Assembly (NCBI GenBank): GCA_965649825.1
Contig: OZ287701.1
Location: 1,291,101 to 1,355,100 of the forward strand
DNA length: 64,000 nt
Reading direction: 5' to 3'
From: Penicillus capitatus
Taxonomy: Eukaryota > Plantae > Chlorophyta
A program made the position numbers and the translations under genes. Within the stretch, counting starts at the first letter, position 1, and every line of letters begins with the position of its first letter. The notes below the pieces were generated by a model that saw nothing but the letters and a program-made list of their open reading frames with translations, had not been told where the DNA came from and did no database searches. Below are positions 33,401 to 52,700 of this stretch, one piece after another.

Positions 33401-36400
33401 GCCAGGTTCGGAAGCGACTCGCCGGCATGTTGAGGCGCCGCTACGGCGACATTTTCTAGTGCGCTCATCGCCGCCTGACGCACACTCCAGTTTCCGTCAC
33501 CGAACCCATTGGACAAAGTCGGCAGCGCCTCTTCCGCGTGTTGAGGCGCCGATTTGACGACATTTCCAATTGCGGTCATCGCCGCCTGACGCACTCTCCA
33601 ACTTCCGTCACCGAACCCCTTGAACAGAATCGGCAGCGCCTCTTCTGCGTGTAGAGGCGCCGCTGCCACGACATTTCCAAGTGCGTTCATTGCCGCCTGA
33701 CGCACGCTCCACCTTTCATCGCCGCACCCCTTGGACAGTGTCGGCAGCGCTTCTTCTGCGTGTTGAGGCGCCGCTGCGACGACATTTCCAATTGCCGTCA
33801 TTGTTGCCTGACGCACGCTCCGGCTTCCGTCGGCGCACAGCTCATCAAGCGTCGGCAGCGCCTGTCGGGCGTGTTGAGCTGCCGCCTCGACGACATTTCG
33901 AATTGCGAACATCGCCGCTTGACGCACGTCCTTGTCTCCGTCGTCGCACACCTTTTCGAGCGTGGGCAGCACCTTGCCGGTGTGTTGAGGCGCCACCGCG
34001 ACGAGATTTCCAAGTGCTGTCATCGCCGCTCGACGCACTCTCCGGCTTTCGTCGCCGCACAACTTAGCCATCGTTGGCAGCGCATCGACGGCGTGTTGAG
34101 GTGCCGCCTCGACGATATTTCCAAGTGCGGTCATTGCCGCCTGACGCACGTCTTTGTCTCCGTCGTCGCATACCTTTTCGAGAGTGGGCAGCACCTTGCC
34201 GACGTGTTGAGCTGCCGCCTCGACGATATTTCCAAGTGCTGTCATCGCCGCTCGACGCACTCTCCGGCTTTCGTCGCCGCACACCTTTTCGAGCGTGGGC
34301 AGCACCTTGCCGGCGTGTTGAGGCGCCGCTGCGACGACGTTTCCAAGTGCGGTCATTGCCGCCTGACGCACGTCCTTGTCTCCGTCGTCGCACCCTTTGG
34401 ACAGTGTCGGTAGCGCTTCGCCAGCTTGGTGAGGCGCCGCCGCGACGACGTTTCCAAGTGCGGTCATTGCCGCCTGACGCACGTCCTTGTCTCCGTCGTC
34501 GCACACTTTTGCCAGGTTCGGAAGCGACTCGCCGGCATGTTGAGGCGCCGCTACGGCGACATTTTCTAGTGCGCTCATCGCCGCCTGACGCACACTCCAG
34601 TTTCCGTCACCGAACCCATTGGACAAAGTCGGCAGCGCCTCGCTGACGTTTTGAGGTGCCGCCGCGACGACACTTCCTACTGCTGTAATCGCCGCCTGAC
34701 GCACTCTCCAACTTCCGTCGCCGCACCCTTTTGACAGAGTCAGCAGCGCCTCGCCTGCGTGTTGAGGCGCCGCCGCGACGACATTTTCAATTGCAGTCAT
34801 CGCTGCTCGGCGGACGTTCCAGCTTTCGTCACCGAACCCCTTGGACAGAGTCGGCAGCGCCTCTTCCGCGTGTTGAGGCGCCGATTTGACGACATTTCCA
34901 ATTGCGGTCATCGCCGCCTGACGCACTCTCCAACTTCCGTCACCGAACCCCTTGAACAGAATCGGCAGCGCCTCTTTTGCGTGTGGAGGCGCCGCTGCCA
35001 CGACATTTCCAAGTGCGGTCATTGCCGCCTGACGCACGTCGTTGTCTCCATCGTTGCAGCCTTTGGACAGTGTCGGAAGAACTTCGTCGGCGTGTTGAGG
35101 CAATTGTTCTGCGATGACACTCAACATTTCCATGCACTGTTTTTGAGTGCGCCGACTGTCGCCTTTCTCCACTTTACGCAATACGAATTGAATTATCATT
35201 TCACTTCGCTTCTGGTGATGGCTCATGAGCTTTAAGAGATCTGTGATTCTGGTCATTTCTTCACGTGTTAACTGATGCTCGCTCGTCAGCGTCTTTTTTA
35301 TTTCTTCGATGGTTTCATTGAGAATTTGAGGAAATGCTTCCAAGACGCGAGACAATTGTTGAAACTCTTGGACAACGATCTTGCGAATCGGAAGATCGTC
35401 TATAGTGCGCTTCAGCAGTTGACAGGCATTTTTTACGAGTTTGACCACTTGTCCGGCGTTTAAAAGTTCTTCCATATATTCTTCATCAGTTCCTTCTAGT
35501 GTTGCCTCGAGTACTCGCATCTTAGTGAAAAAGTGCTGTATCCCCAGAACTTCGATTGGTGCTTCGTCGACAAGCGAAAGCACCTCTTGCATTGCTAACT
35601 TGCTTCTCCTTTGTGCTAAGGAGTTCATAGCGAAGGAAAGTGTCAATGCGTGCTTTCGATTGTATTTTTCTTGTCGAATAAACTCCGCCACTCTATCTTC
35701 GTCCGATCCTTTTGTTCTCAGGGTTTTTGCGATGTATCTTGCAGTAAAGTATTGCTGAAACGATAGGTGAGGGAACTGATACTCTTGGCCCTCCGACACG
35801 GGCAAGAGGAGTCCACTATCTTCGAGAATTCGAGTTGCATTCTTCAACGTTGCGTGCTGCATAACAAATCTTCCTTGGACGACAATTAGTTTCTTAAGGA
35901 GCGATTCAAAGGCTATCTTCTCCATATCTCTGAGGAGTTCCGCTTTCTGAATGTTTTCTGTGGTTGGCTTCTCCTTGAATCTTTTCCAGGCAAAGTGTGT
36001 TATGTCGTTGTATATTTGGAACATGCTCGCTCTCTTTCCTCGTTCTTCCGTTGCGGTTCCGTGCTTCTTCGACAAGGAACAGAGAATGTTTGCTATCATT
36101 GGAATGTGCGCCATATCCCACAAAGCATTAGAGTCTTCGAGAAAGTGGATGAACCTCGGAGCCTCGTCTTCGGACATTTCGCTCTTTATGTAGTCTCTCA
36201 ACTGCTGATCGTCGAATCCAAGATACTCCACTTGGATATCGACGCGTGTTTCCACGTCTCTCGTGTTGTACGGACGAGAAAGAAACAGCACCTTGCAGGA
36301 TCGCTCCCATACGGTGGACAAGAGGTCGATCGCATGGTCATCTGTCTCTTCCAGTCCGTCAACCATGAGCAGCGTTGAAGGGTCGTCGAGATCGAGTTCC

Positions 36401-39295
36401 ACTCGAGCGACTAGGTCTTCGAAGTCAGAAGTGTGCTTGCTTTCGGGGAAGCACATCTGCGATACCGCTTCTTCGAGTCTTGTCCACTCCTGTCCGTTGT
36501 GCTCTGCACTGTTGAGATGACTCGCCGGCACAGCGTAAACGGCGTTGAAATCCTGTGCCATTGCTCCCAATGCCCATCTGTGTGCGATGACTCTTGCGAC
36601 GCACGTCTTTCCGCAGCCGGGGTTTCCGCAGAGAAGCACTCTCTGGACTTCGCTTTCCGGGTCTCCGGGTTTGAGAGCTCTTCGTTTGAACAGGTCGTCC
36701 AGAACAACAGGGTTCTTGACTCTTGTCTTCTCCTCGCAGTGTTCCTTCGCTTGTTTCCCTCCGCGGTTTGAGGACTCTCCCTTCCTTTCTTCCACTCCTT
36801 GGACAGCTCCTTCTGATCCATCTCTCGGTTCGGTCCCCCGCACTTCTACGATTTTGCCAGAGATGACGACGTGGTGCTTCATGTCCTTGACATGTTTGAG
36901 AGATCCTTCTTCGGTCAAAGAAGTCACCTGCAGGAACAAGACGCTCTTATCGACTTGAGTGTGCTTCTCGTTGTGATACCGTCGCAAAGTCATCATGCAA
37001 GTATCTCTGCCTCAACTCTTCTTCGTGTGCATTCATGACAGCAAGTGGAATGTGCCCCACGTCTCTGCCAATCTTAACCAACAGTTTTTCGTGTTCCGGC
37101 ACGATCCCCTGCAAACTTCCAGCTCGAAGCTTGTCTTCTAGGCTGTTTCCGTCCAACCATCCCATGAGCGCGTCTCTGGAAGATCCCTCGCAAGCATGAT
37201 GTAAGGCTTCGAGTGCTTCCTTGGTCGTTTCGTTGCCTTGTCCAGTCACATGCACCTCGTATATGACATCCAAGAGTGCGATCGAGATGTCGTCATCGTC
37301 GATCCATCCTTCGCCTGCGGCTTGCTGCGTTGCCAGATCCGACAACATGATCGTTGCTTCTCTGCGAGTGCTCTCCGACGATCCTTCGATTGCGAGCATG
37401 CCCAACTCGTCAATGATTCCAAATCTCAGCGCCTTCAACTCTTCGCCGTTTTCTATCTTTCGTTGATTCTCTATTGCGCTACTGTACGCAGACTCGAAGG
37501 CAGCAAGGTTAATTTCGTCCTTCGTAGCTTTCAGCCTTGCTGCCATCAGATCCCACAGCGAGTCGAACCAATGTCTCTTCGACATTTTCGACATTTCGAC
37601 AACGGAGACCTGATTTCTTTCGCTTGAATCCTCAAGGGCCGTCGGATCGATGTCGCCCCTTTCCCGATTTCTAAGAGGATGAAAAACACGCACGAGTCCA
37701 CGAACGACATATTGTTTTGTTTGTGAAACTATTCGTGGAGTAGTGTCGCCTTTAAGGCGTTTGACTGCTTGACGAAGAACTCGGAAATGCATGTCCACAG
37801 AGTAGAACTCGCAGGAGAGTTTCATGGTTCTCTCTTGCTCTGCAATGGTTCTACTCAACGCTCGCTTCTCTTCTTTGCGGATCTCGTTTTGATTGACGGT
37901 GTTAAGTAGGAAAAACGTTTGTTGAAGTGTGAGAAAGGTCCACTTGTGCTCCGAGAAGTTCTCTCTGTTAAGGTTCGGTGTCGCAGAAAGACTTCCCAAA
38001 AGCTTCTTTGCTACGACTATCAGCTGCTCAGCGCCACCGTACACAGATGGATCGACGTGCACAAGTGCCCTGTGGAGGGCGGCGGCGAAGTTCGGTTTCA
38101 GAAATTCTCCTTCGGATATGGAGGAACAAAGGTCGTGAATTAGATTTTGTATAATGGCTTTCTCGTTTGCGGAGCGTGTGGCGATGTCGGCCAGTTCTGC
38201 GTACTCGAGGACAGCCTTCGGCGCGAGACAATCTTCCTTTCGTTCGTGATACTTGCACAGCCATCCGAGGAGGACTGTGCGTTCGTCTTCGTCCGTGGCC
38301 GCGTTGTACGCGGCAACCAACGACTTGGTGCTGTCGATGTTGCACCTCCTCACGACAGCACGCAGAAGGATTCGATTGTAACGTTCTTCAGTCTGGACAT
38401 TTTGGGATGTGAGCTGACCGTCAGTTTCCGACGCGGATGGCCGAGCGCCACTGGGTCCTTCGTCAGGAGCACGAGCTTGCATGTTTTCGCTTGTGGTCTG
38501 CAGGACAAAACGTCTTCGCCCGTCGTTCGGCGAAGCGGACAAGTGCACTTACCGTCGCAAAAAGTTCGCAGAAAAGTTCGCAGTGTCAGAAAGATGCCGT
38601 CGGCGTTGTCGTTAACGTTAAATGCGATTGAGTCGATTGATTCGACTGACGCATCCTGCAGAAGAGCAGATCCGAGTCATAGATGCAGACATCGAGGGAG
38701 ACACAGACATCTCAGCACACGAGCGAGATTCAAGCTTAGTAATCTGGAATTGAGTTAGCACAGCAAAACAACAACAGGCAGCATGTCATCCAATGGCGCC
38801 ACTCCGTCCGAATCGCGATCCAAACTCTGGAAGAACGTCTTACCTGCATCGCATGCAATGCCGTGTCCGTAGCCGAGCGTCTCTTCTGCTTTGTTTCTCC
38901 GCGTACTTGAAGAAGTCGTGGACAGTCATGAGTCGTTTCTTGTCTGGATGGCCAGGGGATGAGATGTCGACCCAGAAAGGAAGCTGGATGCGACTGAGGG
39001 ACTCCTTCGAATCTCCCAGATCGAAATCTCCGACGCTCAGACTCGAGAAATGCACATCTCTGACGCGGAAGTGTCGTTTCTGACACTTTCTGCTTAAGGG
39101 ACGTTCGTTCAGGAGAAGGCGAAACAACGGGGGACGGTGTTTCAGGATCCGCTCGGTGCAGAAGTTCCCGATTTGGCGAACACCGCGGAAGCCGTCGTGC
39201 AGAAGCTGTTGGAGTGGAGGCGGAGACTGTTGGAGGAGAGCTGCGAAGGTTGGTTGGTTCGAAGGGACGTCCTCCGGTCGGTGACTGCGCGGCAT
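30433..39295 (-). CDS. NLR-like STAND protein copy A: N-terminal helical domain-NACHT-about 40 HEAT repeats
   Basis: Exons 39295-38844, 38743-38719, 38655-38553, 38497-36980, 36927-30433. Walker A GNPGCGKT, Walker B LLMVDGLEE, winged-helix FPHLSFQQYF. Open frame from ATG 38482 is about 2665 aa; a +1 indel near 38585 breaks the link to the upstream exons. Confidence 0.9.
30720..35100 (-). repeat. Tandem array of 117-bp (39-aa) HEAT repeats; about 33 near-identical and about 7 diverged C-terminal units
   Basis: Consensus HAGEALPTLSKGCGDxxxxVRQAAMTAIGNVVAAAPQ counted in the 2187-aa translation; high DNA identity between units. Confidence 0.95.
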
Positions 39296-39383
39296 TGCCA
39301 GGACGCTGCCGAACTCTCCGCGATGTGAGGTGACGTGACGTTTCGACGACGATCGATCGATCTTTTGCATGGAGCGCTACCGT

Positions 39384-39690
39384 TGTCGCGTAGGGTTTTA
39401 GATGGAAACAATTTGAACGGTGGGCGCACGTAAACCTTTTGAAACGTAAAGTCTTACAAACGAAAGACAAGATCTGTACATTCACAATGCTTTTATATGG
39501 TACTTTATTTTAAGTAACAAAGAAGGAATATTCTGCGAAGATTCCGGAATCTACTTGGAATCTGTGACGTAGAGCCGCGGGTCTATTTGTGGATGGGAAG
39601 GTGTAGCGAACCTACGACCTGTCGCTTGGAGATCGACACAAGTGTAAGTAGATGAGCTCATTGTTAGGGGCGTGTTGGCTTAACACAACA
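39384..39690 (-). repeat. 3' LTR (307 bp)
   Basis: Identical by eye to 45890..46196; TATAAAA at 39497-39491 on the minus strand. Confidence 0.97.
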
Positions 39691-39712
39691 TGGGCCCACC
39701 TATCTTCTGTCT
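39691..39712 (-). promoter_or_regulatory. Polypurine-tract-like segment
   Basis: AGACAGAAGATAGGTGGGCCCA abutting the 3' LTR. Confidence 0.55.
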
Positions 39713-42702
39713 AATCTCCGAAGGAAGTCACGATGGACATTGTGCAGTGTCGAACCATTGGGCATACGGATATCCCAACGGTGGTCACTATGTTTCTTCA
39801 CCACCACACAAGGATAGACCCATTTGGAGTAGAGTTTGGAGTCGAGGCGGTCGGCCAGCTGCGTGTTGTACCATGAAACCTTTGCTCCTTCTTCAATGGG
39901 ACGGATCTTGACTGTCTTGTGGTGCCTTGCATTGGTTGTTTGGTGTGACTTAATTATTCGTTGATAAGCTAGTCCTCGGTCGGTGTCTAGTTGTTGTGGA
40001 CTAGTTATCGTGCCATCCCGTTGTGTGCCAGTTAGAAGGTATTGTGGACAGAACAGAGTCGTACTATGGATCGTTCGGTTGATCTCTTGTACGCTCGTGC
40101 TCACATGTGTCGTCCAATCACCTCTCCTTTCCGCCCATATCCGCCTAAGTCGGTTTACGAGGTTTCGGTTGAACGCTTCGACAGTGCCCGCACTTTTGTG
40201 GGAATAGGCTGGGGTATGTAAAATATCTATTCCGTGCTGTGTGCAAGTACTTTCGAAGCTCCTAGCAATGAAGGCGCTTCCGTTGTCGCAGAGGATTCTT
40301 TGCGGAGCCCCAAACTTTCGTGCCCATTCGAGTACCAGCTTGATAGCCTGTGCTGCTGAGCAGGTCTTGCATGGGCGCCCCACGCCGAACTTAGTGAAAG
40401 CATCGATTCCGGTAGCGATATACCGAAATCCGTGGCTGCCACGGTTCAGCGGTCCAATGAAGTCTAGACACAGTGTGTGGTTCGGTGATGGACTGTCAAT
40501 CATACCCAAGTCTACCTCCGACCGTGGGTTGCGAAACATTTGGCACGTTTCGCAGTTATTGACGTAATCTCGCACGTCGTTGAAGTCGTTCGTCCATCGG
40601 GTTCCGTCGGACCGCAGGTTAAGGAATGTTTTCCTTACCCCGAAGTGGCCTGCATGAGCCTTCTTGATGAGCTCGGTCCGTTCTTCCGGAGTGTAGGATA
40701 CGGAGTTCACTTGATATCCCTGTTGTTTCTTCTTGGTGTGAAATGCGACAGGTGCGTTGTCCCTCCATCGGCTGAGAAGATCCGCTATCACGTTGTCCTT
40801 CCCCTCTACAAAACAGAAGTGGAGACGATCATGGGAAAAGTGGTGCCGGAGCCAGCAATGCTGTCTCTGGATCCGGAGGTCCTTGAACTTATGTAGAAAT
40901 GTTGGCTCCTTGAGCCAATTGACCGTCGCCATGTTGTCGGAGTAAACGAATACCTCCGTCTGCTTGATCACAAAGTAACATTCCTTCAAGGCCCGTACTA
41001 TCCCCATCAGTTCTCCCAGAAAACTTCCGACCCTCTGTTTCGTCGTGAAGGAGCCAAAGAGAACAGGTTGCAAGGTCGAGTTTAACAGGACATAGCCGAA
41101 CTGGTTCAATGGGTTACCACACCAATCCGTATACAGATGGAAAGATCCCCGTGTTTCCAACGTCAGTCGGTATGTATTGAGGCATAGAGTCTGAACTGCG
41201 TCCTTGTATATCTCGTCAGCCTTGGTGTAGTCATTGTGTTCGCGTTTCAGGAATGGCTTGAGTTGTGTGACGATCGAGTCGTATTTGTAACAGTACTGTG
41301 CCAGTTGCTGGCACAGACCCATGGCCTTTTGTACGTCGTGACGTGATGTGATAGTTGGCAGCTTCTGGAGTATAGCCTGAGCCCTGTGGTAGGGGTTCAA
41401 CGTCCCGCCACTGAGTTCAGTACCCAGAAAGCTTACCGATGTCTCAAACCAGTCACATTTTTGATAGTTGATCGTCAGGCCATATTCGTCAAAACGTTCA
41501 AATAAAAGCTTGGTCTTGAGGAGGAGTTCCTCCTCGGTTTCGCCGCCGATCAATATGTCGTCAAAGTATCGGACCACATCCATGCCCTGTAGGATGTGGG
41601 TCATGCGGTTATTAAAAAGCTCCGGACTGACGTTGACGCCTTGCGGCAGTCTCCGAAAGCCGTACGTGACGCCGTTCCAATGGAGTGCAAAGAAAAGCGA
41701 AATACTGTCATCGATGGGGATGGAGCCGTAGCCGTGAACAATGTCCACGATGGTGTATACGGTCCACTTGGGATCCACCTTTTGAATGATGTTGGCCACT
41801 GGGATGATGGTCCCCCCCTGAGTTCCCTTCAGGTAAGTATTGATATCGCGGAAGTCAATGGTGGGCCGAATCTTGCCATTTGGTTTACGTATGAAGTTTA
41901 AAGGTGCTACGACTGCTCGTATTGCCTCAGCAATAGACAATGGTCGTATAACACCCTCCTTATGCAGCGAGTCGATCTCTTTTGAGATCTCCTCGTTGGT
42001 AAGGTCTGATACGTAGTTCTCCCGCCAACATGGCTTAGGCTCGCCCTGCCAACAAAGGTCTGCGTCCCGTATCCTGATGTTCCACAGCTTATTGGTTGTG
42101 GGACGAATGGTATCCGAAAAAACTAATGGAAAGTCATGTCTTAGTTGCGATATTGTCTCGTTCCTTTCTTCTGGTGTCGTGATATTCATGATATTGACAC
42201 GTTTGGTCTTCTCTCTCAACGGGTACTCGATACCATCAACATCGATAATGGAGTCCACGTTGCCCTTGGCACAACAGAGTCGCATCTTGCTGGTGATATG
42301 CTGTGGGACATCGGACTGGTTAAAGATTACCACGCTGATCTGACCATTCGTGTGTATCTTGACCTTGCAGAAGATGTTCTTGTTATGGGTGCAGTCAAAA
42401 AATGCCGCCCATTCTGTTGTTTCGGCAAACTTGAAGGGCAAAATGATGCGGCGACTCCGAAAAGGTCCTAACACAAAACTTCTTCCAGCTACGAAGACGA
42501 CCCAGCCGTTTTGTTTGAACGGGAATAACTCCCGGTCGATCGATTCTGTGACTTGAAGTGAAGAAAATGCCGGTCTCTTTTCTTGTGTCTCTTGCGGTGA
42601 ATCTTCATTCCAATGAGATTTTACCAGTACCAAACGTTTTTCTTGTGGTGCACGCGGTTTGCCTTGTGCCTGCTGAAAAACAGGCCGGTGCCTCAGTTTT
42701 TT
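39700..42702 (-). CDS. LTR element pol: dUTPase-fold-like segment, reverse transcriptase, RNase H, integrase
   Basis: IDFRDIN, RLPQG, YFDD; RNase H TD..E..SDN..ADLLSR; integrase H-x3-H..C-x2-C, LDFIG, DNGSAF, VEAFN. Confidence 0.96.
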   Translation of the reverse strand, partial: KKLRHRPVFQQAQGKPRAPQEKRLVLVKSHWNEDSPQETQEKRPAFSSLQVTESIDRELFPFKQNGWVVFVAGRSFVLGPFRSRRIILPFKFAETTEWAAFFDCTHNKNIFCKVKIHTNGQISVVIFNQSDVPQHITSKMRLCCAKGNVDSIIDVDGIEYPLREKTKRVNIMNITTPEERNETISQLRHDFPLVFSDTIRPTTNKLWNIRIRDADLCWQGEPKPCWRENYVSDLTNEEISKEIDSLHKEGVIRPLSIAEAIRAVVAPLNFIRKPNGKIRPTIDFRDINTYLKGTQGGTIIPVANIIQKVDPKWTVYTIVDIVHGYGSIPIDDSISLFFALHWNGVTYGFRRLPQGVNVSPELFNNRMTHILQGMDVVRYFDDILIGGETEEELLLKTKLLFERFDEYGLTINYQKCDWFETSVSFLGTELSGGTLNPYHRAQAILQKLPTITSRHDVQKAMGLCQQLAQYCYKYDSIVTQLKPFLKREHNDYTKADEIYKDAVQTLCLNTYRLTLETRGSFHLYTDWCGNPLNQFGYVLLNSTLQPVLFGSFTTKQRVGSFLGELMGIVRALKECYFVIKQTEVFVYSDNMATVNWLKEPTFLHKFKDLRIQRQHCWLRHHFSHDRLHFCFVEGKDNVIADLLSRWRDNAPVAFHTKKKQQGYQVNSVSYTPEERTELIKKAHAGHFGVRKTFLNLRSDGTRWTNDFNDVRDYVNNCETCQMFRNPRSEVDLGMIDSPSPNHTLCLDFIGPLNRGSHGFRYIATGIDAFTKFGVGRPCKTCSAAQAIKLVLEWARKFGAPQRILCDNGSAFIARSFESTCTQHGIDILHTPAYSHKSAGTVEAFNRNLVNRLRRIWAERRGDWTTHVSTSVQEINRTIHSTTLFCPQYLLTGTQRDGTITSPQQLDTDRGLAYQRIIKSHQTTNARHHKTVKIRPIEEGAKVSWYNTQLADRLDSKLYSKWVYPCVVVKKHSDHRWDIRMPNGSTLHNVHRDFLRRLDRR

Positions 42703-45700
42703 GATACGGAGACGTTGTGGATGAGAATTTTATTGCCTTCGCCGTCGTACACGCAGTCCTCGTCACAATTGAGTTGTAACTTGAATGCTTGAAGGGTTCG
42801 CAGTCCTAGTATCGGACGTTGGACGCCTTCACAGACGACGAAGGGTATCTCTGCGCCTTTGTTCCCGAGGGTGCATACCAAAGAGATTTCGCCACATGTG
42901 TTGGTTGTTTGGTTGTTGAAACTGGTTACGGTCCGAATCTTTGTGGACTTGAGCACGAGATTGTGTTTTCTTGCCAGCTTCGCCGGGAGAATATTCGTTT
43001 GCGCACCAGAATCCAAAAGGCAGGAGATTTTTCCTGTAATTTTCTCCATACTGAGCGGAACGTTGTATTGGGACATCCTCCGAGAACTCTGGTTATGATC
43101 CGGAATTGCTTGTGCAACGGTTCCCGATCTCTGAGTTCCGAAGGCCTCTGCAGTCATGGGACAGCCTTTCATGGGGTGGCCCTGCTCGCATGTATGCCCA
43201 TACTCAGGTCGTACGTTATGTCTCTGACCTAACGACACGACATTCTGCACAGTACGTTCTGCCTGTAAACATTCGTCTATGATCCTCTGGACACGTGTCC
43301 AATTATCTGCATCTCCCCATGGTAATCCACGCAATCTTGACTGAATTTCCGTGTTCGCAATATTAAAGATTCTCTCAGTCGCAATAGCGTACTTAATCGG
43401 GTCGTCTATCCGATCAAGTAATTTCGTCATTCTACGTGTGAATTGAGAGAGATCTTCTTTGCGGTTTGGCAGCATTTTGTGGACATTTTTTATCGTAGGT
43501 CCCTTGCCAATGGGTGGTTTGGCGGGGGCCTGGTCCACTGGTGTACTCGGAATCGTAGGACCTTCATTGCGACGCCTGTTTGTGCTCTTGAGCGCCTGCG
43601 CATGTTGTTTTGGCTCGGTGGCTTCTCGGCTTTCGGGCGATGTGTCATGGGGATGCTGCTCACGTGCTCGATCTTCGATTGCTTCCACTCGCTGTCCAAT
43701 CGTAAGAATGCTGGCTTCCATAATCTCCTCCAATCTCCCTTGTCTGCTGACGAGTCTTTCCTCGAGTTCTTCAGCGCGTCGCATGAATCCTTCCTGAAAT
43801 GATTGGAAACCTTCCATCAAGGATTGGAACAAGTGTCCCGACTGAGGCCCCTGACGGGTCTCTGGTAATGGGTCTGGGCGGATTTCGTTTCCTTGTCTGG
43901 CACGTCCGGGTTCCTCGGGTACAGATGCATCAATTTGTCGCACTTGATTTTGGATCTGCTGATCCGGCTGCTCTGGTGGTGCTTGCTGATCCGGCTGCTC
44001 TGGTGGTGCGTGCTGATCCGGCTGCTCTGGTGGTGCGTGCTGATCCGGCTGCTCTGGTGGTGCGTGCTGATCCGGCTGCTCTGGTGGTACAGTCTGAGAG
44101 AGAAAGAGCTGTTGCGATCGCCTCCAATCTCGTCGACAGATGTACCAAAATAGTTTGCACACCCACCAGATCCCTTGGATCACGGCCCAAATATGCATGA
44201 TCGCCTTGCGGATGTTCCTCAGTACACTCAAGGTCCATGCCACGACTTTGTAAAAAAGCATAGCCGTCCCTAATAATTGCCAGCCATTACCAGTGACCAG
44301 AGCATTACGGATTGCCCGGGGACCTAATCTATTCCAGATTGTGCCCCACATCCATGTGACAAAGTTGTCTCGGGCACTGGTCAACCATTTTAAAGAGCGA
44401 TCGAGGAGTGTCTCATTCCCGTGATTGTACCCCCAACCGTTTATTTGGTTCTCGCAGATGCAATCGTCTAGGGCCGTCCTCATACTCTCGGTATGTTCAC
44501 TTATCCTGTCGATTGTCCTGCGAATATTGCTTAGGGTTTCGTTGAGGTGTTGCCATTCGTCAGAACCTCTCTGTTCTCGTGCATCTTGTGGCCCTTGAGG
44601 TCCTTGGCCTTGGTTGTCCGTCGACGAACCGTTTAAAGTGATGTTCTTAAACTGGTTGAGATCGTGTAAGGACTCAGAGACGAGTTGTAAGTCTCCCTGT
44701 AGTGTAGACTTCTGAAGGTTGTTGATGACCGAGACGGTGATAGTCGTCAACAAGCTTGCCGGGGAGAACGTGGAACGTACATCTCTGTTTGTCATCCAGT
44801 TGACGACCCCGTGTGTGGTGAGACCTACAACAGCACTTGTGATCATCTCGTTCAGGTAGCCTGGCCACGGGAGGTCGATCTCTATTCCCCAATCGGGAAA
44901 CACGGTCCAAGAGTGTCCACCTTCAGGCGGCAGAGCGTCCCCCATCTCATGCATGTTGAATACATTTTCAGGAGGGAGTTCTTGTTCAGTTTCTTGGTCT
45001 TCGGACTGTTCGGACCGTGCACCTTCTCCGGGTTCTGACTGTGGAGCCTCCTCGTCGAACAGATCTTCAGACACCTCCACTGGGATCTCGTACTCGTCAT
45101 ATTCGAGCTTGTAAGTTTCTGCGTCGGGATCTGTTTCCAGTGGCAAGTCCGTATCATGTCCGTCTTTAGACTCCGCGACCGGAATGGCGAACTCAAAACG
45201 CCTGCGGAGGGCTCTCGCCGAACCTGCTATGGTACGTCTGTCTTCTTCGGCATGTGTGTCTTCGCACACGAGGTCGTGTACCTTCTGTCTAGACGCGTCC
45301 AGCAGTGTCTTTTGTTCCCACGTCTGTGAATGAGTGCCAGGGATCAGTAGAAAGAAGGACATTCCTGTAGCTAGCAACGGTTTTCCTCCCCAATAGACCA
45401 GGGAACCTTCGCCGAGAAGCATGATCAGCATATTGGCTTCCTCGTACGTAATGCCTTCGCTTGCGTCATAGAAGATGATGCCGTTAGGGCACTCTTTGAC
45501 GAAGACCGCGATCTCCCTTTGAAGTATTCTAGCCTCATCCACAGATTTGGATTGCGGTTTAATATACTTGAAACAACTGCTCTTTTGTAGACTAGGCTCA
45601 TTCTTGATTCCGTTAACCAGCGAGTCGCATGTACTTGTCGTACAGTAGAGAATGGTAGACGTCGCTTTATCGTAAAAATTGTTGTCTACCTTGTCGTTTA

Positions 45701-45890
45701 TACTACGAGCAAGGTTATCGACATACTGATCTATCCAGTCTCCGCCACCGCGGATGTTTTCCTGGATGCTTGTTAGAGTTTTATTCCGTAACTCTCTTAT
45801 TCCATCCTTCCAGCCGAACCATGCGCCGTGCGTGACGGCGGCATAGCATAGAACCCACAACAGCATTGGGAGCACTCGCTCCGAAACCAT
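42693..45890 (-). CDS. LTR element ORF1 (about 1065 aa): signal peptide, AAA+-like domain, env-like/TM region, Gag-like region, aspartic protease
   Basis: MVSERVLPMLLWVLCYAAVTHGA leader; hydrophobic W-rich segments 44290-44135; coiled coil; GHTCEQGHPMKGC knuckle-like motif; LLDSGA and ILG protease motifs. Confidence 0.88.
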   Translation of the reverse strand: MVSERVLPMLLWVLCYAAVTHGAWFGWKDGIRELRNKTLTSIQENIRGGGDWIDQYVDNLARSINDKVDNNFYDKATSTILYCTTSTCDSLVNGIKNEPSLQKSSCFKYIKPQSKSVDEARILQREIAVFVKECPNGIIFYDASEGITYEEANMLIMLLGEGSLVYWGGKPLLATGMSFFLLIPGTHSQTWEQKTLLDASRQKVHDLVCEDTHAEEDRRTIAGSARALRRRFEFAIPVAESKDGHDTDLPLETDPDAETYKLEYDEYEIPVEVSEDLFDEEAPQSEPGEGARSEQSEDQETEQELPPENVFNMHEMGDALPPEGGHSWTVFPDWGIEIDLPWPGYLNEMITSAVVGLTTHGVVNWMTNRDVRSTFSPASLLTTITVSVINNLQKSTLQGDLQLVSESLHDLNQFKNITLNGSSTDNQGQGPQGPQDAREQRGSDEWQHLNETLSNIRRTIDRISEHTESMRTALDDCICENQINGWGYNHGNETLLDRSLKWLTSARDNFVTWMWGTIWNRLGPRAIRNALVTGNGWQLLGTAMLFYKVVAWTLSVLRNIRKAIMHIWAVIQGIWWVCKLFWYICRRDWRRSQQLFLSQTVPPEQPDQHAPPEQPDQHAPPEQPDQHAPPEQPDQQAPPEQPDQQIQNQVRQIDASVPEEPGRARQGNEIRPDPLPETRQGPQSGHLFQSLMEGFQSFQEGFMRRAEELEERLVSRQGRLEEIMEASILTIGQRVEAIEDRAREQHPHDTSPESREATEPKQHAQALKSTNRRRNEGPTIPSTPVDQAPAKPPIGKGPTIKNVHKMLPNRKEDLSQFTRRMTKLLDRIDDPIKYAIATERIFNIANTEIQSRLRGLPWGDADNWTRVQRIIDECLQAERTVQNVVSLGQRHNVRPEYGHTCEQGHPMKGCPMTAEAFGTQRSGTVAQAIPDHNQSSRRMSQYNVPLSMEKITGKISCLLDSGAQTNILPAKLARKHNLVLKSTKIRTVTSFNNQTTNTCGEISLVCTLGNKGAEIPFVVCEGVQRPILGLRTLQAFKLQLNCDEDCVYDGEGNKILIHNVSVSKN
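42696..42702 (-). promoter_or_regulatory. -1 ribosomal frameshift slippery site A_AAA_AAC with downstream stem-loop
   Basis: TCA AAA AAC TGA ends ORF1; the -1 frame is open directly into pol; paired stem 42691-42650. Confidence 0.85.
45878..45889 (-). promoter_or_regulatory. Primer-binding site, iMet-tRNA-like
   Basis: TGGTTTCGGAGC immediately after the LTR; 10/12 match to the plant iMet PBS TGGTATCAGAGC. Confidence 0.7.
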
Positions 45891-46196
45891 GTCGCGTAGG
45901 GTTTTAGATGGAAACAATTTGAACGGTGGGCGCACGTAAACCTTTTGAAACGTAAAGTCTTACAAACGAAAGACAAGATCTGTACATTCACAATGCTTTT
46001 ATATGGTACTTTATTTTAAGTAACAAAGAAGGAATATTCTGCGAAGATTCCGGAATCTACTTGGAATCTGTGACGTAGAGCCGCGGGTCTATTTGTGGAT
46101 GGGAAGGTGTAGCGAACCTACGACCTGTCGCTTGGAGATCGACACAAGTGTAAGTAGATGAGCTCATTGTTAGGGGCGTGTTGGCTTAACACAACA
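45890..46196 (-). repeat. 5' LTR (307 bp)
   Basis: Identical by eye to 39384..39690; minus-strand AATAAA and TATAAAA (46003-45997). Confidence 0.97.
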
Positions 46197-46779
46197 CCGT
46201 CTGCTCGAGCGCGTCGGCGAGGGATCGTACGGGACGGTGAGGACAAGAGGGAGAGATGGAAGACGGCGGTGGGTGTCTAGGTGTTTAAGGGACGCTGTTC
46301 GGGCACGGGTCGCATCGTGGCACTGAAGTTCTTGTCCAAGGAGGGAAGGACATCCGATGACGTGACGTCTCTGAAGCGAGATCGAGAGTCTGCGGAGGTT
46401 GAAGCATCCACATGTGATCCAGCTGCTGGACAGTTTTGAGACCGATGGAGAGGTCTGTGTGGTGACCGGTGTTTGAGATCGGGGTCACACATTGTCAGCT
46501 CCTCACGGAATCGCCAAGAGTAGCGGACACCACGCCGGCGAACCATCCAGAAGACTTCTCGGAATTGAAGCTATTCTGGCACGAAACGGCCACAAAAATG
46601 TCTGATAAGACGTCTCAACTCAGATGAAGTGAACGCTTGGGACAAGCGGGCTGACCGATTAAACCAACATGTTAGACCGTATCACTCTGCGATCATCACC
46701 GTGCTATGGAATCAACCTTCGCTCCAACCATTAGAAGACAGGACCGCAACTCACGACTAATCGAGTGAACACGGGCCCC

Positions 46780-47290: not shown

Positions 47291-47871
47291 GGACCAAAAT
47301 GGACAAGTCCTCTCTACTAGGCGAAAAAGCGCTTTGTCGTGTTCAGACGATGGCCCGAGCGACTGCTCTCATTCAAACGCGTACGTTTCTTCGCGCGGAC
47401 GAAGGAAGACGCAGTTGCTGTGGTTGCATAGTTTTGGGCAAAGTGCGAAGTTCAGCAGGAAAACTGTGGAATCGAAGGCAGAGGTTGACGATAACAGCGA
47501 TACGCGGGAAAGGAGATTACGAGGAGTTGTGTTCCGATAATGAACCTGCATTCTTTGGACCTTCTTTTTTTGAGCACGAACTGCAAACCCATGCAGAGCA
47601 ACACCGACAACAATAAGCTACACAGCTGAACAGAGCGCAGCCCTGTGCCAGTCCATGATGGCATGGCCTGCCTTTGCACCACCACCACCACCACAAGATT
47701 GCTCGAATGAAGTGACGACGCATGAGCACGTTGCCGATTCGGATGCGGCTGCGCTCTTCGTGCAACGTATGTCCGCACAGCACTCTTTTGCACTGTATTT
47801 ACACTTTCTGTACGCAATGACCGAAAAGAACCATTTTTCAAGCGTTGCGTCCTGCTGTGGGAGCTTCGAAG

Positions 47872-49239
47872 ATGCCGACCGACTGGATGCGCCGACGTCT
47901 CGAACGTCACATCATTACGCGTAAGATGGATGTCGTGAAGCTCCGACTCGGTCGACCGGGAGGAATCATCGCGACACGACCTCTGCGGAGTCGCCGGCGC
48001 GTCACGGTCTGCGTCTCGGCAGCCAATAGAGAAAAAGACAGGAGGTCGGTCGAAATGGTCGGATTGGGGAATCTCTGCATCGATGTCCGTCTAGCAGTGT
48101 CCCGTTTACCCCGTCAACACCAAGGATGGCGCCATACGTTTATGCAAGAATTCCTTCAACATCCTCCTGTGCACGCCATCTACGAACCGGGTGGTATTAT
48201 GAACACCCTCATTGCTGGATCGCGCCTGGGATTGGACGCAATGGCTGTGGGACGTATGGGCATGGACGATCATGGGAGATTCTGTCGAACCTGTCTGAAA
48301 CAAGAAGGCATTCCGTATGTCAATGGATTTGATGTGGAGCCTCGACGTTATCTAACACCACACTCTTTGGTGAATGAGACGTCTGTGTGTCTTGTCATTG
48401 TCGATTCTTCGCAGCGTCATCTATTCTGTAGTACATTTGAAGTGGAGCCGGGGCCCGTCTTCCATCACCCTTCTAATCTCACTGCTCTCGCGTTGCAACA
48501 GATTCGAGAGGCAAAGGCGCTGTTCATGAATGGCTATGTATTTCAAGAATGCAGTGGCGAAATGCTGAAGTTTGCTTTCGACGAGGCGATCCAGGCCCAG
48601 ACGGCGACGTTTTTTGATCCTGGGCCTTACGGAACAAAAATGGCCAACGGATCGGCCGAACGACGCAGAGAGCTGCAAGAGATCATGCATCGATCGCACG
48701 TTGTCCTGGCAACGGAAGAGGAGGCAATGGCAGTGACAGCGACGTCCGATGCGATAGAGGCAGGACGGAAGATGATGCAGCACCCCAACAGCGTCACGCA
48801 ATGGGTGGTGATCAAACTGGGCGCCAAGGGATCGCTGTTTTTACAGAGAGACGTCGCAGAAGTGAAATACACAGCTGGGTATCCAGTACATGTGTCAGAT
48901 ACCGTTGGCTGTGGTGACAGCTTTGGTGCTGCTGTTGTCTACGGTTATCTCCGTCGTCAAGGAGAGAGGCCCGACGGTGTGATGGAACTGGCCAATGCGA
49001 TCGGTGCTATGACGGCAACGAAACAGGGCGCCGGTCGAAATGTCGCCAATCTGGATGATGTGAAGGCTCTACTGGAGAGACAACTGAAAGGATGCGCCGG
49101 CAGCAATGGTCACGTCGGTGTGGGGGCAGCGATAGATTTGTTACAGATGGGAGAGCACAAGCATCAGAGCCATCAAGATCACCACAATTATGCAGATCCT
49201 TCACTTACGTTTCAAACACAACAGAGATGCTTTGGCTGA
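47872..49239 (+). CDS. PfkB/ribokinase-family kinase with transit-peptide-like N-terminus (plastid nucleoside kinase-like), intronless
   Basis: VGLGNLCIDV, GG..N..IAGSRLG, FFDPGP, VVIKLGAKGS, DTVGCGDSF (PfkB signature 2). Start 47872 or 47926. Confidence 0.93.
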   Translation: MPTDWMRRRLERHIITRKMDVVKLRLGRPGGIIATRPLRSRRRVTVCVSAANREKDRRSVEMVGLGNLCIDVRLAVSRLPRQHQGWRHTFMQEFLQHPPVHAIYEPGGIMNTLIAGSRLGLDAMAVGRMGMDDHGRFCRTCLKQEGIPYVNGFDVEPRRYLTPHSLVNETSVCLVIVDSSQRHLFCSTFEVEPGPVFHHPSNLTALALQQIREAKALFMNGYVFQECSGEMLKFAFDEAIQAQTATFFDPGPYGTKMANGSAERRRELQEIMHRSHVVLATEEEAMAVTATSDAIEAGRKMMQHPNSVTQWVVIKLGAKGSLFLQRDVAEVKYTAGYPVHVSDTVGCGDSFGAAVVYGYLRRQGERPDGVMELANAIGAMTATKQGAGRNVANLDDVKALLERQLKGCAGSNGHVGVGAAIDLLQMGEHKHQSHQDHHNYADPSLTFQTQQRCFG

Positions 49240-49707: not shown

Positions 49708-52700
49708 TCAAAATGCCGAACCTGGTATGGAAGGCGAGGATGGACTGTATCCCGGACTGGTAGGAGAGTATCCAGGCGATCTCCCACTCCCTGGCATCTG
49801 CGGTGTGTAACTCGGCGATGTGACCCGACCGGTTGAATGAGGACTGTAGTCCGGTGAGCTGAACTGCCTGGAGCCAGGAGGGGAGTAAGGAGAAGATCCA
49901 CCGCTGTCCCGAGTCATTGGCCTTCCAATCTGATTCGGTGCAAAGGACGGCGAAGAAGGAGAGTATCCAGGCGACTTTCTCGCACCATGCATCTGAGGAG
50001 AGTACGAAGGCGATCCCACCGAAACACCAGGAGATGTCGGTGTGTATCCCGTTTGAGGGGATGTGGATCGATTGGCTGCCGGAGAGTAACCAGGCGACGT
50101 CGGCGAGTAGTTTGGACTGGTAGGGGAGACACTCGGACTGGTGGGAGAATATCGCGGTCCTCGCGAGGAGTAAGTAGGACTGACAGGAGAGGTGTTCGTT
50201 CGAGGACTCGATGCCAGAAATGACGGAACGCCAGGGGAAGTCTGTGGCTGCTGGGGTGAGTAGCCAGGAGACGTCGGCGAGTAGCCACGTGCATCGGCAT
50301 ACGTCATTGGCGAAGTGGGAGACAGTCCAGGAGATGCTGGATTGTATGCGATGGCTCCGGGAGATCGTGGCGACATCGGAATGCAATTCGGACTGCCCGG
50401 CATGTAGCTGCCCGTCATCTGGTTGACAGAAGAGAGCATCGATCCGGGAGACTGTGGACTGCCAGGGGACCATCCAGGAGAGGTATAGTAGTTCCTCGTT
50501 GGCGAGAAGGAAGGACTGGCGACCGGAGCTGGCGAGAATTCGATACCTTCCACCATTGGAGATGTCAGATGAAAACCAGAATCGGCAAGAAACGAAGGGC
50601 CAGGGGTGAACGGTGCGAGACGGGGAGACATGGCATTCATGCGAACGTTGGGTGCCGTCGAGAGGTCTGCCACGTCGTATCCAATTTTCTCAGCCTCCAT
50701 CGCTTCCATCAGCAGCTCTTCGTTGAGCATAAGATCGAAACATCCCGTTCCCAAAGGACACAGCTGACCCAGCATGATATTCTCGGAGACGCCCTTCATG
50801 GTATCTCTCTCGGCATAGATCGCCGCCCTCAACAGAATCTCGACCGTCTCTTCGAAGGAACACTGTGCCCACGGAGATTTCTCCGTTCGGTTGATGCCGT
50901 GACGTGTGATCGCCATCACGTACCCACGAAACGTCATCATATCACAGAGAATCGCCAGATGACGGTAGTTCACATAGGACCCATCGAATTCAATGACACC
51001 TCTGAGTTCCTTCAGCAGTGCCGCACGGACGGCCTCGATGCCCAACACCTCCAGGACTTCGATAAGATGATTGCTGAGTGTTCTGGTGTAATCCACGCCT
51101 TCTTGGCAGAGAACCTCTCTCAGATTGACGCCTTCGGTGTCCAGAAGATACTCTTCGCGTTCCTTAAATGTCCCGTCCTCTTCATCGAAGGCTTTGGATT
51201 TTTCGGCCCGGATGAACACGCGATGGATATCTTGCACGCCTTGGAGCTCCATTTCCATCAGCAATCCTTCCAGTCGACGCAGGGCCTCGTTAAAATCGGT
51301 GTCCTGTTGCGTATAGTCGGTGCTCTTGCCCGTCTCGTCTCCGCAGATGATCCGAATCCTCAACACCAGTTCATCGGCATTGTCGTCCGTGTGAATGAGG
51401 TAAAGAAAATCGCCGTAGAGGGCACTCATCTTTCCAGCAATTTTCTCCATCGTCAGATTCTTATCCAACATCATTTCTTTGTTCAGCACAATACGCAGAA
51501 CCCACAACGAGATGCTGTTCACATTGAGGCCCTCGGTGTCACCCAGAATATAGTAATCGGCCAGCCATTCCTTATCCTCTGGCACCACTGTGGTGTAGAT
51601 ATCCGGATCATACCAGATCTCTGCCACCTGGACCACGTTTTTGAGCTTGGTAAATTCCAGCTGGCACTGTACGGCCTTGGCTGCTTCTTTGTCATCCTGT
51701 GCCTCGCCTAGGAGGTAGACAGATAGAGAGGGGGTCTTGATATTCTTGGCCACGTTAATGATCTCTGTTAGACGAGGGACACCCAACGTCACGTTCTTGG
51801 CTGAGACACCAGCATAGTGAAAGGTATTCAGCGTCATCTGCGTTGTCGGTTCGCCGACGGACTGCGCTGCAATGGTGCCGATGCACTCTCCTGGATGTGC
51901 CTTGGCGGCATGAAACTTCGTTATGATCTCGCCCATCACCCAGTCGAACGCCTGTTGCGTCAGTTTAAATTCTCTGAGGACGCGTTTGGAGGCGAGGATG
52001 CCGCGGACATGGCACATAAAGAGGAACACCGCATCGTACTGCGATTCGGCTGTGGGTGGCTCTTCTGGTGTCAGTCCAGCAATTTTCTTGTCCATCTCCT
52101 GGACAGCTTGGATCACATGAGCAGGACTGAAGGCTGGAGGGGGACCCCTTGTCTTGACATTAAACATCCTCTGGGCATTCCAGATCAATCTCTTGATATG
52201 GACGGGCAGATGCACACGGGTATCCCCATCCGGCAGCACGCGTTTTCTCAAGATCTCCAGATCCTGTTTCAGTTTTTCCTGCTCCTGTTCCAACAGGACA
52301 CGCAGATCGCTCTTCTTGGCATCCCGCCAGATGGTGGGGTCCATGTAGGAAGGACAGTGATCCTGATCGATATTGATCACGTACATTCTTTCAAACAGCT
52401 TTCTCTCCATACCATAGTGCTCAAGCTTCTGCACTTCGATAAAGGCGCCGTCCATTCCGTCTTCTCCATAGAGAAACTGCACCACTTCGCCGGAGGAGTT
52501 GCGAACGGTGCCATCGTATCGGATCATCAAATCCTCCATGGCCTTGACAAGACGTCGCTGAATGTACCCAGTGCTCGATGTCTTGACGGCGGTGTCGATG
52601 AGACCTTCTCGTCCACCCATGGCATGAAAGAAAAACTCCACAGGCGTCAATCCCTTGCAATAGGAGTTGCCAACAAATCCTCGGCTTTCGGGTCCAAAGT

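Follow-up and report, generated by a model that had tools for sequence, protein, structure and literature searches.

The 64,000-nucleotide stretch of the Penicillus capitatus genome analyzed here (the window) harbors a complete long terminal repeat (LTR) retrotransposon at positions 39384-46196 of the minus strand (6813 bp). The first open reading frame of this element, ORF1, begins with a domain that is very probably a nucleotide-free pseudo-AAA+ module of the Clp/Hsp100-D2 type, a homologue of that group but one lying outside Pfam AAA_2 by Pfam's criterion. An earlier sequence-only reading of the region 45180-45790 (minus strand), which corresponds to ORF1 residues 34-237 counted from the ATG at 45890, had proposed a captured, inactive Clp- or Torsin-like AAA+ domain. 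Its fold assignment was right: Clp/Hsp100-D2 is supported as the nearest family, and assignment to the Torsin or LAP1 families finds no support. The same reading had missed the in-frame fusion of the domain, via a membrane anchor, to Gag and protease. The explanation favored here, and considered probable overall, is that the domain forms the pseudo-AAA+ head of a membrane-anchored Gag-protease (Gag-PR) polyprotein and was probably derived from a host. The head comprises the following features.

45174-45824, minus strand: nucleotide-free Clp-D2-like AAA+ domain, amino acids 23-239, two N-terminal helices and an alpha/beta core (beta1-beta5)
45624-45647, minus strand: former Walker-A site, YCTTSTCD, amino acids 82-89, with the P-loop deleted and a conserved C-x4-C instead
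45456-45479, minus strand: Walker-B remnant, IIFYDASE, amino acids 138-145, with D142 at the position of D677 and A143 at that of E678
45333-45356, minus strand: sensor-1 strand beta4, FFLLIPGT, amino acids 179-186, with G185 opposite N719
45198-45215, minus strand: RALRRR, amino acids 226-231, candidate arginine finger and also a minimal R-x-x-R / dibasic motif

The six motifs on which the sequence-only reading had relied, IQENIRGGGDWIDQYVDNLARS, TILYCTTSTCDSL, CPNGIIFYDASE, NMLIMLLGEGSL..GKPL, FFLLIPG and ALRRRFEFAI, were found to be real and to lie in a single minus-strand frame. This frame is uninterrupted, the domain recurs in other copies of the element at 31-93% identity and its ratio of nonsynonymous to synonymous substitution rates (dN/dS) is 0.22, which places the motif-bearing domain beyond chance. 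Searches with the head of ORF1 as a single sequence were empty in Pfam, in phmmer against the PDB and in a word-indexed protein search (residues 1-430); neither Pfam nor the PDB reveals this domain to a single-sequence search, so that confirmation of the motif reading required a profile. A phmmer search of 1.84 billion protein representatives with ORF1 residues 1-590 as the query retrieved 11 proteins, namely copies or fragments of the element and one cellular protein, P0032, which carries two tandem copies of the domain. A family profile of eight domain sequences (A1) was run against all PDB sequences and gave 49 matches, of which the best 32, and 43 of the 49 overall, were Clp/Hsp100 proteins matched in D2. 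Human CLPB/Skd3 was matched at E=9.8e-6, ClpC at 6e-4 and ClpB-D2 at about 8e-4, the ClpC and ClpB-D2 values together spanning 6e-4 to 1e-3. Against the same sequences, a profile of the elements alone gave a weak match to CLPB (E about 0.2), and so did P0032 by itself (E=0.09). Both results point, weakly, to the Clp family and to no other, which is the behavior of a true remote homologue. Alignment of the family with Escherichia coli K-12 ClpB by hhalign paired ORF1 residues 126-176 with ClpB 661-711 (P=0.0016), and the block aligned with Clp/Hsp100 proteins consists of Walker B, a helix, a beta-hairpin and the sensor-1 strand.

Structure prediction was in agreement with the profile searches. 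AlphaFold, run on a 12-row alignment in which an equivalent database protein took the place of the L001 translation (L001 being another copy of the element), returned a model with a predicted local distance difference test (pLDDT) score of 73.5 and a predicted template modeling score (pTM) of 0.75. The order of elements along the chain, a-a-b1-a-b2-a-b3-a-hairpin-b4-a-a-b5, is that of AAA+/ASCE proteins. Prediction from the single sequence (residues 1-585) was poor, with a pLDDT of 41. Foldseek searches of the PDB with the model gave the best probability and template modeling score (TM-score) to Skd3 (probability 0.98, TM-score 0.49-0.50), followed by ClpB-D2 (0.95) and ClpC (0.95), and recovered TorsinA (5j1t_A) at rank 34 with probability 0.85 and TM-score 0.46; the top matches were all P-loop NTPases. 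In the viral library of Foldseek, a phage AAA protein (probability 1.00) and a phage ClpA (0.96) were found. Thus, the profile against the PDB, the hhalign comparison with ClpB, the AlphaFold order of elements and Foldseek all agree on a Clp-D2/Torsin-like AAA+ core. A vWA/MIDAS-type or a P-loop-kinase-type domain was also considered and was rejected on Foldseek TM-scores and probabilities.

The residues required for ATP hydrolysis appear to have been lost. The extended alignment of ORF1 with ClpB is reliable solely in the block from Walker B to sensor 1. In this alignment, the ClpB P-loop (604-609) has no counterpart in ORF1 and T84 lies opposite the Walker-A lysine K611. Four cysteines, C83, C88, C106 and C134, are invariant among the element copies, and the C-x4/5-C pair (C83, C88) together with C106 is common to the element copies and both repeats of P0032. 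The ClpB pore loop (649-656), including the aromatic Y653, is likewise without a counterpart. In the Walker-B remnant the aspartate is kept (D142 opposite D677) and the catalytic glutamate is absent, A143 being placed opposite E678; the sensor-1 asparagine is replaced by glycine (G185) in ORF1 and by R and H in the two repeats of P0032. The C-terminal lid with sensor 2 is absent, as b5 is followed by an acidic disordered linker in ORF1 and by the next repeat in P0032. Deletion of the P-loop and the replacement of the Walker-B glutamate and of the sensor-1 asparagine bear out the proposal of an inactive enzyme, and support a domain that is, as judged from its residues, CATALYTICALLY dead.

The sequence-only reading had further proposed that the arginine finger was retained. 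The last arginine of ALRRR (R231) was found to be invariant in 8/8 sequences, both P0032 repeats included, and one of these repeats reads ALQHRI, retaining only the last arginine. In the model, R231 ends the last helix two residues ahead of the core strand b5, a position like that of R756 in ClpB-D2. When the tail of ORF1 was aligned by hhalign, the best local match in ClpB was the arginine-finger segment of D1 (327-337), and this match was weak (P=0.097). Conservation and modeled position are therefore consistent with R231 as a candidate arginine finger, whereas its register is unconfirmed by sequence alignment.

The cellular relative bears on the origin of the domain. P0032 was matched at E=2e-6 (query residues 74-240 against P0032 residues 287-451) and is the product, 727 amino acids long, of an intron-containing gene of Chlorella ohadii (GCA_025026875.1; L005:5001-11125, JADXDR010000023.1). 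From its N- to its C-terminus it consists of a weak match to the SAP domain, an alanine-rich region, one transmembrane (TM) segment and the two tandem domain copies. Its membrane orientation is opposite to that of the element, and it contains no trace of the stalk, Gag or protease of the element. Fragments closely related to it (P0037-P0039) occur in other samples. The view that the domain was captured is supported by this Chlorella ohadii homologue and by sister elements without the domain, the direction of the transfer being inferred. The most economical account is capture from a P0032-type host gene, and comparison of these sequences indicates that the element most likely acquired the domain from a host membrane protein of this type.

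The remainder of ORF1 gives the head its context. The order along the polyprotein is signal peptide, pseudo-AAA+ domain, acidic linker, helical ectodomain, membrane anchor, proline-rich repeats, coiled coil, Gag and protease.

42693-45890, minus strand: ORF1, 1065 amino acids, Gag-protease polyprotein with a secretory membrane-anchored module in frame upstream (ORF calling, Pfam, hydropathy)
45825-45890, minus strand: signal-peptide-like N-terminus, amino acids 1-22 (hydropathy)
44871-45173, minus strand: acidic linker, predicted to be disordered, amino acids 240-340, differing in length between copies
44286-44870, minus strand: conserved helical ectodomain (stalk), amino acids 341-535 (sequence and family comparison)
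44133-44285, minus strand: membrane anchor, adjacent hydrophobic segments at amino acids 539-557 and 563-585, then RRDWRR (hydropathy)
43930-44124, minus strand: PPEQPDQHA five times (amino acids 601-645), encoded by 27-nt tandem repeats, then a coiled coil (tandem-repeat search)
within 42693-45890, minus strand: Gag-like region with zinc knuckle, amino acids about 800-940 (sequence)
42756-43043, minus strand: aspartic protease (D-S-G-A), amino acids about 950-1045 (Pfam gag-asp_proteas / RVP)

The signal peptide claimed by the sequence-only reading was borne out as signal-peptide-like by hydropathy: the N-terminus contains a 19-residue hydrophobic stretch with a Kyte-Doolittle mean of 1.5 (peak over residues 1-24) and ends ..AVTHG/AW. 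The stalk shows heptad-like helices, a D-C-x-C motif, four N-x-S/T sites and a tryptophan-rich membrane-proximal segment; a profile of the stalk found no relative of known structure among PDB sequences, viral fusion proteins included. The zinc knuckle of the window copy is incomplete owing to one short in-frame deletion, and L001, P0025 and L003 have the full CCHC. The Pfam scores of the protease are under the curated cut-offs in the window copy and over them in P0025. It was also observed that L001 has another proline/serine-rich sequence between the anchor and Gag, where ORF1 of the window has the PPEQPDQHA repeats.

The element that carries ORF1 has the anatomy of a Ty3/gypsy-type retrotransposon, with reverse transcriptase (RT), RNase H and integrase (IN) encoded in a second open reading frame.

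39384-46196, minus strand: LTR retrotransposon, Ty3/gypsy-type, order PR-RT-RNaseH-IN (LTR pair and Pfam domains of the ORFs)
45890-46196, minus strand: 5' LTR (direct-repeat search)
39384-39690, minus strand: 3' LTR (direct-repeat search)
about 39691-39710, minus strand: purine-rich tract 5' of the 3' LTR (read from the sequence)
46197-46200, minus strand: target-site duplication ACGG, 5' side (read directly from the sequence)
39380-39383, minus strand: target-site duplication ACGG, 3' side (the same four bases as on the 5' side)
45872-45889, minus strand: primer-binding site (PBS), beginning TGG and abutting the 5' LTR (read from the sequence)
39700-42729, minus strand: ORF2 (pol), RT, RNase H and integrase (Pfam and frame analysis)

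The element has the structural hallmarks of the Ty3/gypsy type (TG..CA LTRs, target-site duplication, PBS and polypurine tract) and its gene order of gag followed by PR-RT-RNaseH-IN, and distant pol relatives have Ty3/gypsy-type RT_RNaseH domains. The two LTRs, 307 bp each with ends TG..CA, are 100% identical; the insertion is therefore very recent. Both ORF1 and ORF2 are free of stops and frameshifts in the window copy. ORF2 lies in the -1 frame relative to ORF1, the two open frames sharing 37 nt, and matches Pfam RVT_1 (6e-22), rve (7e-15) and Integrase_H2C2 (4e-11). Within pol (39700-42729, minus strand), the RNase H part matched Pfam RVT_3 (PF13456) at E=0.009 and RT_RNaseH more weakly at E=0.12; in a survey from 2023 (PMC10508981), green algae yielded no LTR elements that carry the additional archaeal-type RNase H. 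The ATG of ORF1 (45890) takes its A from the end of the 5' LTR (..CA) and its TG from the start of the PBS (TGG..). The start codon thus spans the LTR/PBS junction, so that the PBS encodes the first residues of the signal peptide, MVSER.., and this start is retained in the diverged copies P0029, P0030 and P0034, which are about 31% identical in the remaining head.

ORF1 of the window was matched to contig ctg339203_20x_l of the ENA metagenome assembly ERZ25074695, and the closest relatives of pol are further copies from that assembly, with identities of 93% and 67%. Further out are proteins of Caulerpa lentillifera (55%), which is the nearest source among named organisms, and the Logan contigs L003 (52%) and L004 (39%). 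Clusters of pol at 90% identity or more contain 17 members on at least 14 contigs, which makes the element family multi-copy. In L002:1500-8460, the copy of the same assembly with 67% identity in pol, only short ORFs were observed upstream of pol and no long ORF1, so that this copy looks degraded. The Gag-PR of L003 is homologous to that of the window element (E=1e-19), and L003:2-2434 (Logan SRR33785046) has the layout signal peptide - ectodomain - TM - Gag - PR. Its ectodomain has no detectable relation to the AAA-like head or the stalk of the window element. The pre-Gag module of L003 was also seen to have a coiled coil and a cysteine-rich loop in the ectodomain, and about three hydrophobic segments. 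L004 has an apparently ordinary Gag, on a contig too short to exclude an upstream ORF. As L003 combines the same layout with an unrelated ectodomain, the membrane-anchored Gag predates the AAA-like head; it seems to be a trait of the clade, to which the head would have been added in one sub-lineage. A scan of IMG/VR for the domain pattern found nothing. The sole match of a scan of JGI metagenomes, L007, was rejected as a chance match, antisense in an unrelated gene.

Selection was evaluated against L001 (L001:2444-5800). The AAA-like core showed a dN/dS of 0.22 over 161 codons, the stalk 0.16 and the protease 0.07, each with a dS of about 1.4, and pol showed 0.11 with a dS of 0.33. The first 22 codons of ORF1, which overlap the PBS, gave 0.69 with a dS of 0.06, too few changes to interpret. 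Judged by these codon ratios, the domain is under purifying selection, and it is retained in lineages just 31-33% identical. The contrast in dS between these segments (0.06, about 1.4 and 0.33) points to a mosaic or recombinant history and suggests recombination between diverged lineages of the element family.

A way of working can be proposed for the head, although tentatively and with somewhat less than even confidence. Through the signal peptide, the head and stalk would be directed into the endoplasmic reticulum (ER) lumen or the perinuclear space, and the anchor followed by RRDWRR would leave Gag-PR cytosolic, given an odd number of membrane spans. The polyprotein would then be inserted in the ER or nuclear-envelope membrane with the pseudo-AAA+ head lumenal and Gag-PR cytosolic. 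Without ATP hydrolysis, the head could act as an interaction or oligomerization module that uses the AAA+ subunit interface with its conserved arginine; such a role is suggested because the head cannot bind nucleotide yet keeps its arginine-bearing inter-subunit surface under purifying selection. It may pair with other copies of itself or else with the protein that partners the cellular SAP-TM homologue in the host, and by analogy with LAP1/LULL1 and Torsin this pairing would concentrate and position Gag assembly at the ER or nuclear-envelope membrane. The lumenal location and the co-option of a host lumenal ATPase, both put forward in the sequence-only reading, are plausible by the same analogy. 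A further extension is speculative and rather unlikely as a whole: green algae and the window host might have a system like that of LAP1, in which a chromatin-binding protein of the nuclear envelope carries lumenal nucleotide-free Clp-D2 domains, the element having copied such a lumenal head onto its Gag, so that the capsid precursor would assemble at the nuclear envelope or ER through that machinery. If this were true, Torsin-like perinuclear machinery would exist outside animals, and a mobile element would mimic an inner-nuclear-membrane protein.

Several observations weigh against the interpretation as a host-derived, Clp-like head that works in the lumen. The sequence match that reaches significance is limited to the block from Walker B to sensor 1, about 90 residues. 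Single-sequence matches to Pfam AAA_2, Torsin or LAP1_C were absent in 12 family members even at E<=10, and no LAP1, LULL1 or Torsin chain occurred among the PDB sequence matches of the family profile at E<=10. The alignment behind the AlphaFold model is shallow, with 12 rows only, and Foldseek against the PDB gave no match at E<=1e-3, the E-values being about 1e-2 and the TM-scores about 0.5. A forced full-length alignment sets R756 of ClpB opposite K203 and not R231, in a stretch of zero confidence. P0032 is known from Chlorella ohadii, an organism other than the host of the window. With two hydrophobic segments side by side, the topology is ambiguous, as an even number of spans would leave Gag lumenal as well. 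Finally, Torsins are reported to be absent from plants and fungi (bioRxiv 10.1101/2025.11.07.687155), so that no partner ATPase can be named.

The main rival is that the domain is the receptor-binding surface subunit of an envelope-like protein, with RALRRR a furin/kexin-type site that frees it from a fusion/anchor subunit and the AAA+ ancestry functionally irrelevant; this is considered possible but unlikely. ORF1 does have the signal peptide, N-x-S/T sites, R-x-x-R / tri-arginine motif and heptad-like helices downstream, along with D-C-x-C, a tryptophan-rich membrane-proximal stretch and a membrane anchor, although the helices, D-C-x-C and tryptophan-rich stretch are non-diagnostic for class I fusion proteins. 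The tri-arginine is strictly retained in every element copy, head and stalk evolve faster than pol, as in envelope genes, and the topology fits enveloped particles with the head outside and Gag inside. The arginine motif, however, is ancestral to the fold and occurs in both repeats of the cellular P0032, the ALQHRI version of which is not multibasic. For this reason the notion that RALRRR is merely a convertase site, which the sequence-only reading had offered against itself, is weakened. In the model, moreover, the motif ends a core helix and the next residues form strand beta5 (pLDDT about 80), so that cleavage within this folded core would cut through the domain and not between domains. Hydropathy of ORF1 revealed no hydrophobic fusion-peptide-like segment after RALRRR, which is followed by the acidic linker; the stalk profile matched no viral fusion protein in the PDB, and dN/dS values of 0.16-0.23 are those of purifying, not diversifying, selection. 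A surface role on enveloped particles would nevertheless be compatible with the favored pseudo-AAA+ head on a membrane-anchored Gag.

The reverse transfer, in which the Chlorella protein would be a domesticated piece of such a retrotransposon, is judged improbable. Among the 1.84 billion representatives, the element as query drew out a single cellular-type cluster. The other relatives of cellular type (P0037-P0039) are fragments closely matching this one gene, so that the cellular family seems a narrow one; in addition, CLPB is about as distant from the cellular protein as from the element copies. Against this, AAA+ domains are a cellular type of domain, the domain is missing from sister elements whose Gag-PR-pol is homologous, and P0032 has introns, a SAP domain, the opposite orientation and no trace of stalk, Gag or PR. 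Capture by the element is therefore preferred.

It is very unlikely that the resemblance to AAA+ proteins arose by chance, the domain being some other Rossmann-like alpha/beta domain (e.g., P-loop-kinase-like) or an element-specific fold in which AAA+ motifs have been over-read. Such a reading could draw on the missing Pfam match, on the poor single-sequence model and on Foldseek, where the top E-value belongs to an APS kinase and none reaches 1e-3. The APS-kinase matches, however, have TM-scores of 0.24-0.30 and probabilities of 0.57-0.89, as against about 0.5 and 0.95-0.98 for the Clp-type matches. The HMMER matches at E=1e-5 are family-exclusive, the element-only profile and the cellular protein recovered the Clp family independently, and the motif order fits, with the gaps lying exactly at the P-loop and the pore loop. 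An NTPase still working with non-canonical residues is scarcely credible, for although the element copies retain the Walker-B aspartate D142 and acidic residues near it, the P-loop of six residues is missing, a conserved C-x4-C standing at its site, the catalytic glutamate, the sensor-1 asparagine and the lid with sensor 2 are all absent, and the P0032 repeats (VLRRVD, VLNRVD) have not kept even the context of the aspartate.

The genes flanking the insertion (an RPB1 gene, a NACHT-HEAT protein and a pfkB kinase) are eukaryotic in type. RPB1 (49708-54684, minus strand) is a neighbor of the insertion and lies almost entirely in one ORF, with about the first 160 residues outside it, which points to an intron-poor genome. 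Its best match among solved structures is mammalian Pol II, which is uninformative as to the host. Near the insertion, a pfkB-family sugar kinase (47845-49239, plus strand) has an arginine/serine-rich N-terminal extension, possibly an organelle-targeting peptide. A 2187-residue ORF (30433-36996, minus strand) encodes an NLR-like protein in which a NACHT domain precedes over 20 HEAT repeats; it is partly built of 111-nt tandem repeats (34000-35187), and the stretch 32001-34000 is GC-rich (0.62). A 686-residue ORF (24380-26440, plus strand) with an Exo_endo_phos_2 endonuclease/reverse-transcriptase-type domain probably belongs to a non-LTR retrotransposon, and strong AT skew was observed around it, over 24001-28000.

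Among known systems, the Clp/Hsp100 D2 domains (ClpB, ClpC, ClpA and CLPB/Skd3; AAA_2, PF07724) are the sole family with significant sequence similarity to the head and gave the top Foldseek probability and TM-score. The head differs from them in having no P-loop, pore loop, catalytic glutamate, sensor-1 asparagine or lid with sensor 2, in being below Pfam detection, and in its predicted secreted or lumenal rather than cytosolic or organellar location. Torsins are AAA+ proteins of the ER lumen that resemble Clp-D2, bear a signal peptide and conserved cysteines and have no aromatic residues in the pore loop (PMC7175109). The head shares with them the signal peptide, the Clp-D2-like fold and the cysteines, and the TorsinA match in Foldseek is the only link; neither Pfam nor PDB sequences gave a match between the head and the Torsin family (PF06309). 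In their active-site residues the two are inverse, since Torsins keep Walker A and B and sensors 1 and 2 and have no arginine finger.

The closest parallel in architecture is to LAP1 and LULL1. The lumenal domain of LAP1 is nucleotide-free and ClpB-D2-like, without Walker A or the C-terminal domain, has a conserved disulfide in the pocket and completes the Torsin active site with its arginine finger (PMC4358337); LAP1 and LULL1 tether Torsin to the membrane and donate the arginine (PMC4358337; PMC7175109). The head of ORF1 is likewise a nucleotide-free ClpB-D2-like domain, membrane-tethered and predicted here to be lumenal, with Walker A lost, Walker B degenerate and the lid absent, with conserved cysteines at the former pocket and with a strictly conserved arginine that is a candidate for the finger position. 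P0032 resembles LAP1 further in its order of a nuclear-type N-terminal domain (SAP), a TM segment and then the lumenal domain. The differences are equally clear. There is no sequence relation to LAP1 or LULL1, i.e., no Pfam match to LAP1_C (PF05609) and no chain among the PDB matches or the Foldseek top 50; the element protein is predicted to be of type I orientation, with the signal peptide first and the anchor C-terminal; its domain is fused to a retrotransposon Gag-PR and occurs outside Metazoa, where no Torsin is known; and the cellular form P0032 has two tandem copies. The Chlorella protein, with SAP, TM and two nucleotide-free Clp-D2 domains, would accordingly be an architectural counterpart of LAP1 in a lineage reported to be without Torsins, and it makes testable, by surveys of sequences and structures, the idea that perinuclear systems of the Torsin/LAP1 kind have a greater age or a wider distribution than has been assumed.

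Extra domains known in LTR retrotransposons are chromodomains, an extra RNase H, a demethylase and virus-derived envelope genes; the fixation of extra protein domains in these elements is rare. The literature searched contained no description of an LTR element that carries an AAA-like domain or has a membrane module joined to Gag on its upstream side. The window element resembles the domain-capturing LTR elements (the chromodomain of chromoviruses and the ALKBH demethylase captured by an orchid Ty3/gypsy element; PMC9289625) in that a rare extra cellular domain has been fixed and selected across a lineage. It differs from them in that their domains stand on pol or gag and are nuclear or cytosolic, whereas the domain described here would be placed in the lumen of the secretory pathway. 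With envelope-carrying LTR elements (errantiviruses/gypsy, Athila/Tat, SIRE and Cer) and retroviruses it shares a signal-peptide-bearing, membrane-anchored, glycoprotein-like module besides gag-pol. The module of the window element, however, lies 5' of gag in the same frame and not in a separate 3' ORF, and its head is a cellular pseudo-ATPase domain for which no viral fusion-protein relative was detected. With a lumenal pseudo-ATPase joined through the anchor to Gag, the capsid precursor itself would become a type-I membrane protein. The element can be regarded as an LTR retrotransposon that has probably captured a host domain and that bears an envelope-like membrane module, and it would represent a natural example of a retroelement gaining a membrane-associated, envelope-like stage from host parts and not from a virus.

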